Shown here one piece after another: positions 154 to 6,075 of a stretch of 64,000 nucleotides of DNA. Origin of the DNA: Hyaloraphidium curvatum SAG 235-1 (taxonomy: Eukaryota; Fungi; Monoblepharomycota); assembly GCA_025558095.1 (NCBI GenBank), contig JAIVFI010000011.1:1-64000 (forward strand), read 5' to 3'. The translations under genes and the position numbers were made by a program. The notes under the pieces were generated by a model, which did no database searches, had not been told where the DNA came from, and saw only the letters and a list, made by a program, of their open reading frames with translations. How positions within the stretch are numbered: the stretch's first letter is position 1; the number at the start of each line of letters is the position of its first letter.

Positions 154-1115
154 GGCAGAAGCCAGCTCCTCCCTGCGGAAAGAATCTCAGAACCCGTCCC
201 GGGAGACAGTCTCCCCCCCGAACGAATCTCTATCAAGCTAAGTCAAATTTCCATCGTATACTAACTCTACTTCGGGCCTATCGAGACCTGCGGCTTTGAA
301 CCGCTTGTGCGGCGGGTTAACGCTCTAGGCCCCGTTGACTCGGTCCGTCACACTGGGTGTAACGGGATTCCAGCCGTCACCCCGATTCGGATGCGCCGAA
401 GAGCAAACGCATCGCGTACGTCGGTCGTTTACCGGCTTGCCTGTGGGTTCCCGAAAAAGTCGGCCGGGCGGTAGGGAATCCCGCGCCCGACAGCTCCGAA
501 ACCAAACCTAGCCTTTCGGACCTTACACGCTACACTCAGGTACTTCGTACCGTTCGTACAACCCTCCGGATATAAAGATGTTAAGACAGGCGGCCCGTGC
601 CGCCACACTATGCTACGCGGGCCGGATGGTTCCACGGCCGACTTTCACCCGTAGGAGCAAGCTGGCCGCCTATCAACTTTGCACGGATCGTTTTTGCCGT
701 GAAACGTTGATTGGGAGGGAGATAGAGATGCTGGCGGCGCTGCTGGAGGTCATCGAGGGGAAAGGCGGCGGTTGGGGGGCTGGTTGGTGGGGGGAGCCCT
801 GCAACTCTACCCCTCCCTGCTAGCCAACTCTACAAACATCTCGCAGCGATGAGGGGGAGGGGGATAGACATGCAAGCCCCTCAGGGGGACGTCACAGAGA
901 ATCGCAAAAATAGCTCCTGAGAAAGCAATGCGTTTCAGGGAACGAGGCACTCGACAGCCGAACCGGGATGATTGCGATTTTGAACGGAATACACGGGTTG
1001 CAGCGCAATTGCGGATCGATGGTGCGCCCAGCAATGCATACCCAACATCAACAACTGCCGCCGCTTGCTCCCTGAAGCGGCGCTCGCCCCCCGCCACCAC
1101 CTGCTGCCTGCCGCC

Positions 1116-1345
1116 TGTCAGGAGCGCCCGGTCGTGGTCGCACGGCGACCGGCACAGCTCGAGGCCTGGCGTGGGCACGAGATCTCCGTAGGGCTTAACG
1201 ATATCTAGACATTGGAACTACATGACTGTTCTATCGGTTTATATAGTCCGGGCCGCGCAAGATGCCGCGTAAGCGGAGTTCGCGGGAACCCCGGTGAACC
1301 TTCTGGAACCTCCCAGAAGACCCGGCCCCTTGCGAGTCCCTGACA
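1116..1345 (-). repeat. 3' LTR
   Basis: Base-for-base identical to 2994-3223; TG...CA ends with 7-bp terminal inverted repeat. Confidence 0.97.
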
Positions 1346-1360
1346 TCATCTCCCTCCTTC
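1346..1360 (-). other. Polypurine tract (PPT)
   Basis: Minus strand GAAGGAGGGAGATGA directly abuts the 3' LTR. Confidence 0.85.
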
Positions 1361-1942
1361 GGCGCGCTCGTCCCGAGCGCGCAACTTGAGCCTCCCGACG
1401 CGCAAAGCTTGAGCGCGGCGGTGGCGGTGAAAACTTCGCGGTGTGGCAAGTGTCGTGGCAAAGCTTGACCGCGAACCTGAACATGGCGTGGCTCTTTGAG
1501 CATGGCAATGGCATAAACGATGAACCTTGACGTGGCTTGGCGTAAACGATGAACCTTGACGTGACTTGATGCATGGCAGGCGTGGGATCGGTCACACGAC
1601 GAGGGAGCCTGATCTCGGGCGTCGAATCCTGCTGGGGGTGGATGTAACCACAATCGATTGACGAGCCGATCCTAGGTGACCAGTGCTTGCTCGGGGGCGG
1701 CGAACCGATGAAAACGGGTCTTCTCAACACAGGGGTGTAGTACCGCAGCTCAATCGGTAATCGGTCCGAGAGCACCTGTGGCCGAGAGGGGTCGATGCGC
1801 GTCGGCTCAATGAGATAGATGCGATGGAGACGTGAAACATGAGACCATGAGACGTGAAGGCCGTGGTGCAGAGTCGGTGAGAGTGACGTTCGATGGTGAA
1901 ACCGTGAAGCAGGATGCGTGGAGATGCGTGGAGCGAGCAGGA

Positions 1943-2941
1943 TCACTTGGCAGGAGGCGGCGGGCGGGCGGAGCGGTCGTTGCATTCGGCCTGGCGGTGA
2001 CCCTCCTTGCCGCAGTAGAAGCAGAGTCCATTGATACGGCGGCGCGCACGCTCCTCATCAGAAAGAGGCCCGTGGCGTAGGCTCGCGATGTCCATGGGGA
2101 CGGGCCCGTCGGTGACGGCGGTCCCGGCCGAGGTGGCTGTCGCGTTCGTGGTCGTGGAAGCGGATGCCGGGAACGTGGTAGTCGAACGAGGGGGGATGCC
2201 GTGAGCAGGCCAGTAGCCCTGCTTCTCGAGACGGCGGCGGTGCAGCTCGTCGTCGACGTCGATGGCGATCTTGATGAGCTCGGAAAGCGTGGCGGGCTTG
2301 TCGCGAATCATGAGGTCCTCCACGGCGTCCTTGAGGCCCATGCGATACTGCGCCATAAGGGCGGCGTCATTATAGCCGGTCTTGGCGGCGAGAAGACGGA
2401 ATTGCGAGGTGTATGCTGAGGCTGAGCTGGTCTGGCGTAGCTCGCGCAGCTTGGCCTGGGCCTTTCCGGCCTCATCCGTCTCGCCGAAGTTGGTTTCGAG
2501 TTCGCTGATGAACTTGGCGTAGTTCGTGGTGATATCGGCGTCGTCCTCGACAGCGGAGAACCAGCTCAGGGCGGCCCCCGAGAGGTGGCTGGCGATGAAG
2601 GCGATGCGCTGACCGTCGGTGCTGTACATGCCGGGGTTTGCGTGGAAGTTGATCTTGATCTGGGTCATGAAGTCGCGGAGCTTGGAGCGGTTGCCATCGA
2701 ACTTCTCCGGGGCGGCAACCTTAATCCGGGGAAGGGCAGCTTCCGGCGGCGATGGGGGCAACTGCTCGCTCTGCCGGGTCCGAGTGGGCTGGCCCGGCGG
2801 CGGCGCGAAGCGGTGGAGTTCTTGGAGTTCTTGACGGAGGGCGTTGACGCTCCCAAGGAGCTCGCTGAACTGAGCGTCCTGGGTGGTGAACTTGGCGGCG
2901 AGGGCCTGAACGAGCCCGGGAATGTCCGTGGGGAGGTCCAT
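1943..2941 (-). CDS. gag: Retrotransposon Gag (332 aa; sushi/PEG10-like capsid plus CCHC zinc knuckle)
   Basis: PEKFDG..KLRDF, IASHLSGAALSWF, LRQTSSASAY..F, PVPMDI, EERARRRINGLCFYCGKEGHRQAEC; N-terminal coiled coil. Confidence 0.95.
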   Translation of the reverse strand: MDLPTDIPGLVQALAAKFTTQDAQFSELLGSVNALRQELQELHRFAPPPGQPTRTRQSEQLPPSPPEAALPRIKVAAPEKFDGNRSKLRDFMTQIKINFHANPGMYSTDGQRIAFIASHLSGAALSWFSAVEDDADITTNYAKFISELETNFGETDEAGKAQAKLRELRQTSSASAYTSQFRLLAAKTGYNDAALMAQYRMGLKDAVEDLMIRDKPATLSELIKIAIDVDDELHRRRLEKQGYWPAHGIPPRSTTTFPASASTTTNATATSAGTAVTDGPVPMDIASLRHGPLSDEERARRRINGLCFYCGKEGHRQAECNDRSARPPPPAK

Positions 2942-2980: not shown

Positions 2981-2992
2981 AATGTCTAGATA
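2981..2992 (-). other. Primer-binding site, self-priming type
   Basis: Minus-strand TATCTAGACATT lies 1 nt after the 5' LTR; it is the exact complement of AATGTCTAGATA in the LTR (3091->3080) and has no TGG tRNA-type start. Confidence 0.85.
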
Positions 2993-2993
2993 A

Positions 2994-3223
2994 TGTCAGG
3001 AGCGCCCGGTCGTGGTCGCACGGCGACCGGCACAGCTCGAGGCCTGGCGTGGGCACGAGATCTCCGTAGGGCTTAACGATATCTAGACATTGGAACTACA
3101 TGACTGTTCTATCGGTTTATATAGTCCGGGCCGCGCAAGATGCCGCGTAAGCGGAGTTCGCGGGAACCCCGGTGAACCTTCTGGAACCTCCCAGAAGACC
3201 CGGCCCCTTGCGAGTCCCTGACA
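2994..3223 (-). repeat. 5' LTR
   Basis: Identical to 1116-1345; lies upstream of gag. Confidence 0.97.
3116..3123 (-). promoter_or_regulatory. LTR TATA box
   Basis: TATATAAA on the minus strand, 32 nt upstream of the PBS-complementary 12-mer (predicted transcription start). Confidence 0.75.
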
Positions 3224-3246
3224 CCGCCAGTCCGACCCCACGCATG

Positions 3247-5010
3247 TCAAACCCCGCCACATGCCGCCTCCCACCGTGCCTCCCACGCTCCCCCCGCTCC
3301 CACCCCCTCCTCCAGCGCCCGCCTGTGCATCGCCAGCATCACCCTCGCCTCGTCTGCCTCCCTCCCCCCGCGGCCCCCGGCGGCGCGCAGGTATCCCGCG
3401 TGCGCCGACGCGGCCAGGAGCAGACAGTGCTGCGCGAACGGCTTGGCGAGCACCTCGGGCGGGAGCATGGGGATCAGCCTCGTCGCTGCGAGCGCGTGCG
3501 CGTGGAGGGCGAGGAAGCCGGGGTCGGCGGGGGCCGAGGGGAGGAGGAGGAGGATGCGGGCGCCGTGGTGCACGAGTAGGGTGTAGGCTGTGAGGGCGAG
3601 AGGGGCGCCGCGGAGTTCGGGGGGAGGGGTGCCGTTGTCGACGAGGAGGCCAGGTGGGGGCAGCTCGGCGTACCAGGCGTCGAGGGCGGCGAGGAGGGGG
3701 GCGCGGTCGGCGAGGAGGGGGGCGCGGTCGGCGCCGGCTGCGGCACAGCGGGAGAAGAGGAGGAAGACGCGCACATGGTGGTGGGTTGGCGAAAAGTCTT
3801 CGTCCGGTCCCAGGGACGACTCGAGGGGGGAAGGCGGGGCGCGGAGCTCGGCGCCGGCCGCGTCAAGGGGCAGGTCGCGGGCGACGCGCGTCATGGCGGC
3901 GGCAAACTCGGCGTCGGTGCGCTGCACGGGCACCCAGCGGCTCTCCTCCTGGTGAAGCAGGGGAGGCCGGCCGTCTATGGCTGCCGCCTGCGCGTCAAAA
4001 ATCGCCAGACTCCACCAGGCACGTGCTGCGCGCTCCGCGACGACATCAGTACGCCCCGCGTAAAAGGAGCCGTCGGTCATGCATGCGACACGGGCGATGC
4101 GCACGGCCAGGGCGACGACGGGCCCAGAGGCGAGTGGTCCGTCGCCGCGAAGCGCCATGGCGACGCCCCCGAGGTGCAGGAGTGCCGACACGACGGCGAC
4201 GGCGAGTTCCCGATAAGAGAGCCACGCCCGAACGGCCGGGGGGGCGATCCACGCGGGCTCACCGACCCCGGGAATGGGCGGAGCGGCGGGAGGGCCCGCC
4301 AGCACGGCCTGCGCAGCGGGGAGCAAGGCATCCTGGGCTCGGGCGGCCATCACGGTAAGAAGGGGGCCGCGCCGGGAACCCAGGGCCGCGCGTAGGGGGC
4401 CGTCCGTCCAAGCCGTCCACAGCAGAATCGACCAGGCCAAAAAGTCGGGGACGGCCCGCGCCGCAAGCTCGCGGCGGAGTTCAGCGGCGACCGTCAAGGG
4501 AAGAGCGGCGTATGTGGAAGCGAGATAGCGCGACATGACGAGGTCGGGCGGCGCCAGCTCGAGGTCGACCGAGGAAGGAGGCGAGAGCGGTAGCGGGGGG
4601 GAAACCGGCTGCGGCCACGCCGGGTTGGGCGCGCCGAATTCTGCCGGCCACGCGAGTGCCTGGGCTAGCATTGGTGTCGCCCACGCCGGCGGTGGAGGCG
4701 GCGAGGGCGCGGCAATCTCGGCGGCCGGCGGGGAGGACGGGCTCGCGGGGCTCGCGGGTGACTCGCTGTCCTCCTTCTTGGCGCCGCGGCGTTTGCCCGG
4801 CCGCCTCCCCCGCCGTTTCGGGGGAAGGAACACGCAGCCCTCGGCGGGGAGGCCATTACGCTCGCAGCGGAGGCAGGCGGCTCCGGGAATCGGCGAGGGG
4901 TCGCAGCGCCGCCGGGCAGCGGTGCAGGCCGTGCAGCTCGCCCGGACCGGGACGGCCAGCCCGCTGCCGACGACGGCGCCGGGCGGCAACGCGGCGGGCG
5001 CTGAAGGCAT
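3247..5010 (-). CDS. Zn(II)2Cys6 transcription factor with fungal middle-homology domain
   Basis: CTACTAARRRC...CLRCERNGLPAEGC cluster, basic NLS, RAARAWWSLAIFD motif; start taken at MPSAPAA. Confidence 0.85.
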   Translation of the reverse strand: MPSAPAALPPGAVVGSGLAVPVRASCTACTAARRRCDPSPIPGAACLRCERNGLPAEGCVFLPPKRRGRRPGKRRGAKKEDSESPASPASPSSPPAAEIAAPSPPPPPAWATPMLAQALAWPAEFGAPNPAWPQPVSPPLPLSPPSSVDLELAPPDLVMSRYLASTYAALPLTVAAELRRELAARAVPDFLAWSILLWTAWTDGPLRAALGSRRGPLLTVMAARAQDALLPAAQAVLAGPPAAPPIPGVGEPAWIAPPAVRAWLSYRELAVAVVSALLHLGGVAMALRGDGPLASGPVVALAVRIARVACMTDGSFYAGRTDVVAERAARAWWSLAIFDAQAAAIDGRPPLLHQEESRWVPVQRTDAEFAAAMTRVARDLPLDAAGAELRAPPSPLESSLGPDEDFSPTHHHVRVFLLFSRCAAAGADRAPLLADRAPLLAALDAWYAELPPPGLLVDNGTPPPELRGAPLALTAYTLLVHHGARILLLLPSAPADPGFLALHAHALAATRLIPMLPPEVLAKPFAQHCLLLAASAHAGYLRAAGGRGGREADEARVMLAMHRRALEEGVGAGGAWEARWEAACGGV

Positions 5011-6075
5011 GGTCGTGGCAGCCGTGGCGGAGGTGACTCGCTGCGGCGGCCGGCGGCCGATCGATCGAGGGATCAGGCGCCGAGCACGCTTCCGCCACAT
5101 CCCCGCGAGAGCAATCCGGCTGCATGGACCCTGGATCCATGGAGAGATGGCGAACAAAGCGATCTTCAAACGGGTGCGTGGACTGGTATGCGTGACGGCG
5201 GCGAGCGCATTCTTGGGGGACAGCTGCGCACCGCCGCCAGGTCGGCCGCCGGGTGGGGTCGGTCGGGAAGACAGCCTCGCTGCCCACTCCGACAGGTAAG
5301 CAGAGAGAGCGCCTCTCACTTCATCTCCTTTGCGCGGTTTTGCTCCCGCGGGCCCGAATCCGTCCATGCAAAGCAGGTCGTCGCGGCGGAGCAACTTTTA
5401 CCTGCGGAGATTTCGCAAGCAACACCGCCCCTGCCCTGTGGCGGGCTTCCGATCGCCCGAGGGCCTGGGGCGGTTGGCTGGCGGGCCCGATTGTGCTCAC
5501 GCTGGACACGTACCAGCACATCCCGGCCCGACGCTTCGAGGCCGATATCTCGAGCAATATTCCGCTGCGATGCGCTGCTGCCTGCCCCGGATCGTCGCGT
5601 TCCTGCTCATCGGATCCATCCGGCGTTGGAATCCATGTCCTCGCATCCCGGCCGCCTCCATATACGTTTGTCGCTATGCGCACCGCCCCCCATGGCCACC
5701 GCCGCGCGCGGCAGTGGGCCCCACTCACCTCCCCGACCAACCGTCGCCCCGGAGGCCCCCAAACCTGCGACCCTGCACCGCGCTCAACGTGCGCGCAGTC
5801 CACCAAGCGCCACTCGACGCGCGCGCCGTCCCTTTTGGTTGCCAGGCGGAAGTGCGGTTCTCGAGGTCCCAGCAGGTCTAGCCGCCGGCCAGCATCCCGG
5901 GTCTGACGCGAACGTACGACAGGACGGAGGGTAGCGACACGGCGCAGAGCGCCCGATTCGCACACGAATTCGTAGCTTGGGCGGGTCTGTGGTCGCACCT
6001 GTGCTGCACGCCGTCCGAGGGAGGTAGGTCTATGCCGCTGGTGAATATGGCTGCCAGACATGGATGCCTCCTGTT

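Follow-up and report, generated by a model that had tools for sequence, protein, structure and literature searches.

A Gag-only LTR retrotransposon of Hyaloraphidium curvatum with a leader predicted to self-prime in the manner of Tf1

How does an LTR retrotransposon that encodes no polymerase, and whose leader lacks the usual TGG of a tRNA-complementary site, start its minus-strand DNA? The question is raised by a small element near one end of the window, i.e., the whole stretch of 64,000 nucleotides analyzed here. The answer that we favor, and hold to be very probable, is that this leader belongs to a Gag-only element of the Ty3/gypsy type (TR-GAG architecture) with Tf1-type self-priming of minus-strand DNA. 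On the minus strand, between 1116 and 3223, there is a complete LTR retrotransposon of 2,108 bp with a single Gag ORF. Its features, in the 5' to 3' order of the element, are the following:

3224..3228, minus strand: upstream copy of the target site duplication (TSD) GGCGG, by direct reading; found again beyond the 3' LTR
2994..3223, minus strand: 5' LTR, 230 nt, TGTCAGG...CCTGACA, a direct repeat 100% identical to 1116-1345
3116..3123, minus strand: TATATAAA box in the promoter core; the core is conserved between families
3080..3091, minus strand: predicted self-primer AATGTCTAGATA, the putative first 12 nt of the transcript, from its complementarity to the primer-binding site (PBS)
3074..3077, minus strand: GTTA, 5' arm of a short second helix whose partner TGAC lies at 2995-2998 at the LTR end (RNAalifold consensus)
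3006..3030, minus strand: U5 inverted repeat CCGGTCG/CGACCGG (alternatively GGTCGC/GCGACC), a candidate U5-IR hairpin
2981..2992, minus strand: candidate PBS TATCTAGACATT, 1 nt after the LTR, a 12/12 complement of 3080-3091
1943..2941, minus strand: gag ORF, 332 aa plus stop, with a capsid domain and one CCHC knuckle
1361..1942, minus strand: 3' noncoding region of ca. 580 nt (tblastn, TRF, and Rfam)
1346..1360, minus strand: polypurine tract (PPT) GAAGGAGGGAGATGA against the 3' LTR, by direct reading
1116..1345, minus strand: 3' LTR, 230 nt, identical to the 5' LTR
1111..1115, minus strand: downstream copy of the TSD GGCGG, by direct reading

An earlier note, made from the letters of this DNA, had called the element gag-only, and this was borne out. 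The Pfam domains of the gag ORF were Ty3_capsid, Retrotrans_gag, and zf-CCHC, with no others, and a tblastn search of the element with the 1,100-aa pol of its nearest relative as the query found no pol (best E value, 1.8). Autonomous relatives have LTRs homologous to the 5' LTR, and their knuckles align with the CCHC knuckle of the element. No Rfam family was found between 1000 and 3400 at E values up to 1, apart from one chance match to a bacterial sRNA, and a scan for bacterial promoters and terminators, of a type not applicable to such DNA, returned nothing. Read depth in one run with DNA-like contigs was ca. 79 over the element versus ca. 84 in the flank, and in the DNA-like run there was a contig break at the LTR boundary. 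Two minor features of the neighborhood can be mentioned here. Between gag and the PPT, a 29-nt unit is found as a tandem duplicate (1509-1568, 93% match by TRF). Upstream, a minus-strand ORF of 715 aa (3247-5394), in which a Zn2Cys6-type cysteine cluster (CTACTAARRRCDPSPIPGAACLRCERNGLPAEGC) can be recognized by eye, ends 24 nt before the 5' LTR, so that the element is located just downstream of it and in the same orientation.

The site where a PBS is expected was the starting point of the self-priming proposal. A single T at 2993 separates the 5' LTR end (CCTGACA) from TATCTAGACATT, and the statement of the earlier note that this position, 1 nt after the LTR, does not read TGG could be verified by direct reading, with no TGG present in the 30 nt that follow the 5' LTR. 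Its second statement, that the site is an exact 12-nt complement of a segment of the LTR, holds at the level of coordinates: TATCTAGACATT (2992..2981) is the reverse complement of AATGTCTAGATA (3091..3080) at 12 of 12 positions. So does the third, the spacing from the promoter, the distance from the first base of TATATAAA (3123..3116) to the beginning of AATGTCTAGATA being 32 nt. The predicted transcript start at 3091 is preceded by CC, and the resulting C/A step is of the pyrimidine-purine kind, which is the usual initiator step. Folding of the RNA from 3091 to 2941, a check that had been proposed together with the idea, gave a minimum free energy structure in which the two 12-mers pair with each other (z = -2.66).

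Short complementary blocks can arise by chance, and the small size of the motif is the one point in favor of such an origin here. Among 20,000 dinucleotide shuffles of the LTR, however, none had a complement of at least 12 nt at offsets 0 to 4 from the LTR end (the maximum, 11, was reached twice), the analytic expectation for a 12-nt complement is 1.2e-5, and the same feature, with a different sequence, is found in at least four other lineages (see below). Coincidence is thus effectively refuted. A second possibility is that a host tRNA, or an internal fragment of one, primes the element and that the match with the LTR is incidental. Priming by half-tRNAs and by internal fragments is indeed known from some copia lineages (PMC6317226). 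However, this PBS lacks the initial TGG, and a count over both strands of the 31.9-Mb genome gave six occurrences of the 12-mer, three in each copy of the element (two LTRs plus the PBS) and none outside the two copies. Because the 12-mer is confined to them, no tRNA gene carries it, which disposes of the tRNA match, over the full 12 nt, that the earlier note had named as a way to be wrong. Moreover, each related family would need a different tRNA that also matched its own LTR. We regard tRNA priming as extremely unlikely.

For self-priming, the comparison with relatives is decisive. The nearest Gag proteins in the genome are those of the C19 and C27 elements (46% and 43% identical in the genome search; 42% and 41% in the MAFFT alignment), and in a collection of 5.8 billion proteins the best Gag relative was 41% identical. 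The C19 and C27 elements are of the autonomous type: downstream of gag, in the -1 frame, they have a pol with RT, RNase H, and integrase domains. The best PDB match of the relatives' pol was the Ty3 Gag-Pol polyprotein. Their LTRs have the same termini as that of the gag-only element and a nearly identical promoter core around TATATAAA (94% identity over 32 nt between the gag-only and C27-family LTRs), and the LTR end is also common to all three (...CTCCTGACA, then T, then TATC). At the position of the 12-mer, the C19 and C27 LTRs read differently, and their PBSs change in step. The primer and PBS pairs identified were as follows:

Gag-only element: primer AATGTCTAGATA, PBS TATCTAGACATT, 12 pairs, 32 nt from the start of the TATA box
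C19: primer CGAACGTTCGGATA, PBS TATCCGAACGTTCG, 14 pairs, 33 nt from the start of the TATA box
C27, C2, and C41 copies: primer GAACGTTCGGATA, PBS TATCCGAACGTTC, 13 pairs, 34 nt from the start of the TATA box
Metagenomic relative L063 (Gag 41% identical): primer ATCGTCTAGAT, PBS ATCTAGACGAT, 11 pairs, 35 nt
Family A (131-nt LTR): primer AACGTCGTCAA, PBS TTGACGACGTT, 11 pairs, no TATA box found
Metagenomic contig L067: primer AAGTGTTGT, PBS ACAACACTT, 9 pairs, about 36 nt

Of the metagenomic leaders, L063 was clear and L067 was used with its 9 nt, while L065 and L066 were not parsed with confidence. The register of the helix is equal in all the lineages, beginning 1 to 2 nt after the LTR; the spacing from the TATA box to the primer is 32 to 35 nt in four of them; and, with the sole exception of the 14-bp helix of C19, the paired stretch of each lineage opens with a purine that follows a run of C. 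This constancy of the spacing and of the purine start is the best available argument, drawn from sequence comparison, that the complementary block would correspond to the 5' end of the RNA.

Compensatory changes, which the earlier note had suggested looking for between PBS and LTR, were found. Within the 12-bp helix, the gag-only element and the C27 family differ by four double compensatory changes with no broken pair, and the gag-only element and the metagenomic relative differ by two compensatory pair changes. Further changes in primer and PBS separate the element from family A, again with no pair broken within the 12 bp. Over the whole leader structure, eight pairs were changed on both sides, versus zero to one when the partners were slid by 1 to 3 columns, and 94% of the cells in the leader alignment were paired, versus 30 to 39% in the slid controls; these alignment-based counts come from five sequences representing two to three lineages, while the comparative set as a whole amounts to about four independent lineages. 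The central idea of the note, a Tf1-like signal retained by a pol-less element, is thus supported both by the covariation of primer and PBS and by the lack of a tRNA-type PBS or of any other genomic match to the 12-mer.

The same data bear on a different use of the duplex, namely that it is functional for cyclization, dimerization, or packaging of the RNA, with priming carried out by something else. In every lineage the core of the primer is indeed a palindrome, TCTAGA in the gag-only element and CGAACGTTCG in its relatives, by which two RNA molecules could pair. However, every lineage has the duplex at the PBS position, 1 to 2 nt beyond the 5' LTR, there is no alternative PBS and no TGG within 30 nt, and the same geometry has been shown experimentally to prime Tf1 (PMC7175516). 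Dimerization and priming are, besides, compatible with each other. As a replacement for self-priming, this alternative appears quite improbable.

The U5 region between the primer and the PBS requires a more cautious reading. The inverted repeat pointed out in the earlier note is present (arms CCGGTCG at 3030..3024 and CGACCGG at 3012..3006), but it is not significant by itself, with stems of at least 7 bp appearing in 9% of the shuffles of the 98-nt R-U5. A hairpin is found at the aligned U5 position in the relatives, with two compensatory pairs, and it is only from this conserved position and these two pairs that the candidate hairpin gains weight. The GTTA/TGAC helix extends the primer-PBS stem, and its pairs are invariant in the five sequences and, therefore, without covariation.

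Has the pol-less form ever moved? A second copy (C2:536462-538569) has the same pol-less structure, unrelated flanks, and its own TSD (AGACC). It differs from the first copy at six internal positions and at none within the LTRs, and both copies have kept an intact gag ORF. Different flanks and TSDs around the same pol-less structure imply at least one integration after the loss of pol, with pol supplied in trans; the pol-less element has transposed. Only two copies exist, and mobilization was accordingly rare. The element could alternatively be seen as an inert deletion relic, copied by duplication at the DNA level, with a fold-back signal that was inherited and stays unused. The number of copies would suit such a relic, and so would the absence of solo LTRs of the gag-only element from the genome. 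However, unrelated flanks, different and perfect TSDs (GGCGG and AGACC), identical LTRs, and a gag that is intact in both copies are the traces of two integrations, and at least one of these must postdate the loss of pol, which makes a relic very unlikely. No autonomous twin with the same LTR or Gag was found in the genome, where the next Gag is 46% identical.

Under self-priming, the replication cycle could proceed as follows. RNA polymerase II would start at or next to 3091, ca. 32 nt after the TATA box, and the first 12 nt of the RNA would fold back over the ca. 86 nt of R-U5, small hairpin included, onto the PBS. An RNase H provided in trans would then cut after the paired stretch, and the freed 3'-OH would prime reverse transcription. 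By analogy with the copying of the tRNA primer in retroviruses, the PBS of the progeny would probably be recopied from the primer, and such recopying would explain why complementarity is perfect despite the drift in sequence. The drift of primer and PBS by compensatory change between close families fits a PBS that is recopied in each cycle. RT, RNase H, and integrase would come from an autonomous, self-priming, chromovirus-like element of the same genome, and Gag from the element itself.

The closest known system is Tf1, whose RNA folds its 11 initial nucleotides onto the PBS and is then cut by RNase H between nucleotides 11 and 12 (PMC7175516). Many elements of fungi, vertebrates, and plants, Tj1 among them, are predicted to self-prime (PMC4600332, PMC6934838, PMC6317226). 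As is predicted for the element described here, the PBSs of Tf1 and Tf2 of Schizosaccharomyces pombe and of Tj1 of S. japonicus complement the start of their own transcript (PMC7175516, PMC4600332). The complement is 11 nt long in Tf1 and a predicted 12 nt here, neither element having a tRNA PBS, and the U5 hairpin located between primer and PBS in Tf1, Tf2, and Tj1 has a candidate counterpart. The cleavage and the start site are proven in Tf1, whereas here they are predicted. Tf1, Tf2, and Tj1 are autonomous (Gag-PR-RT-IN), whereas the element encodes Gag only and would borrow RT, RNase H, and integrase; the Tf2-1-type SH3 domain and the integrase chromodomain are features of its autonomous relatives and not of the element. 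Maggy, Skippy, Cft-1, Boty, Grasshopper, Afut1, sushi, and Tcn1, as well as the plant Tcn1 and TAR lineages, were predicted to self-prime by the same signature (PMC6934838, PMC6317226, PMC7175516). These other predicted self-primers are described in those papers as autonomous, which the gag-only element is not.

The coding content and size are those of the plant TR-GAG elements (Chaparro et al. 2015, PMC4350172), which are shorter than 4 kb, have LTRs, a PBS, a PPT, and a 5-bp TSD, encode in their one ORF a Gag with a zinc knuckle, lack PR, RT, RH, and IN, and are present in at least two copies (PMC4350172). The present element likewise has LTRs, PBS, PPT, a 5-bp TSD, a length of 2,108 bp, a Gag-only ORF, and two mobilized copies. 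In contrast, TR-GAG1 of Coffea, the one example treated in detail there, has a PBS complementary to tRNA-Leu (PMC4350172), where a self-priming PBS is predicted here. Other differences from the plant elements are the fungus-like GC-rich genome, the chromovirus-type lineage, a nearest Gag that is only 46% identical, and the lack of a close autonomous partner. LARD, TRIM, and BARE-2 elements are moved in trans by means of retained LTR ends, PBS, and PPT. LARD and TRIM elements share with the gag-only element the retention of these cis signals but are noncoding, whereas an intact Gag is kept here.

Full-text literature searches found no paper on an element that is gag-only, or otherwise nonautonomous, and self-priming, and the combination appears to be unreported. 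The earlier note overstated the novelty, as self-priming elements and gag-only (TR-GAG) elements were both known already. The combination is also to be expected, because a derivative formed by deletion of pol keeps the self-priming cis signals of its parent. The significance is accordingly modest and current understanding is not overturned. Nevertheless, Tf1-type self-priming would be able to persist as a cis signal on an RNA that encodes no RT, with the enzymes acting in trans, and gag-only (TR-GAG) parasitism is extended from plants to a fungal-type genome. The element offers a natural system in which to ask if the priming cut by RNase H is guided by structure or by sequence. From a practical point of view, such elements would be overlooked or wrongly classified by LTR finders that depend on a PBS of the tRNA type.

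As to the source of the enzymes, a self-priming element of the Tf1/sushi group is a plausible helper. Both candidate families that we examined consist of self-priming Ty3/gypsy elements, and either the C27 type or family A could have supplied pol. The cis signals of the gag-only element are closest to those of the C27 type: LTR termini, promoter core, helix-proximal GATA/TATC, U5 layout, and PPT (GAAGGAGGGAGATGA, similar to GAAAGGGGAGGATGA of the C27 family). In this nearest autonomous family, the integrase tail of the C33 copy contains SH3_Tf2-1 (E value, 4e-16) and Chromo (E value, 1e-11) domains, and coding capacity for Gag, for the RT and RNase H domains, and for the integrase core is retained in the C27 copy. 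No intact C27-type copy was found in the genome; the copies are truncated, the most complete of them by telomere repeats, and those other than the telomere-end copies are fragments or lone LTRs. Family A is intact and more distant, with long open frames and a pol 50% identical to that of C27. It was found at L012:951-1081 and about 15 other loci, and identity among the seven copies compared was 100% over 250 nt, which suggests a very young family. Its LTR (TGTAACG...CCTGACA) is unusually short, 131 nt, and has no TATA box, the 11-nt self-primer being located only 49 nt before the LTR end. The U5 end TCCTGACA is common to family A and the gag-only element, but the U3 end and the PPT are not.

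The primer of the gag-only element fits the PBS of neither family, so the element must prime itself. A bolder proposal, for which we have less than even confidence, is that a Gag-only lineage survives in this genome without a cognate autonomous partner, with its own primer/PBS duplex (removed from the nearest family by four compensatory changes), recent movement, and a Gag at most 46% identical to the other Gags of the genome. If this is true, the helper RT/RNase H would recognize the fold-back by its structure and not by its sequence, and the parasite would prime only itself. TR-GAG-type elements would then have their first report from outside the plants, and reliance on self-priming would be shown for a nonautonomous LTR element for the first time.

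Some peculiarities of the related copies deserve mention. The pol frame of the C33 copy (L003:1600-1620, minus strand) crosses the PPT and stops within the 3' LTR. At C9:849013-849256 and C3:1153357-1153600, a C27-type 5' LTR plus PBS is present (98 to 99% identical) with no gag or pol match nearby; these may be additional copies that are truncated or capped by telomeres. In the metagenomic contig L063 (3473-3877), the end of a pol is followed by a single LTR and then by the next gag-pol, i.e., either a tandem pair sharing one LTR or a repeat collapsed in the assembly.

In the C19, C27, and C41 copies, pol or gag breaks off directly at (TTAGG)n telomere repeats, and at the C2 locus the telomere cuts a nested family A element. 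Altogether, five contig ends finish within a gypsy element directly joined to (TTAGG)n, the telomere unit being TTAGG and not TTAGGG:

L060:6138-6312 (C19): telomere-joined end
L061:7556-7677 (C27): telomere-joined end
L022:1712-1850 (C41): telomere-joined end
L013:2749-2932 (C2): telomere-joined end
L019:2639-2796 (C42): telomere-joined end

No two cut points coincide: they lie in pol (at aa ca. 708 and at aa ca. 1090), in gag, and in two family A copies. Upstream flanks differ among four of the telomere-end insertions, which are independent C27-type copies, and all five telomere-joined elements are oriented 5' to 3' toward the telomere.
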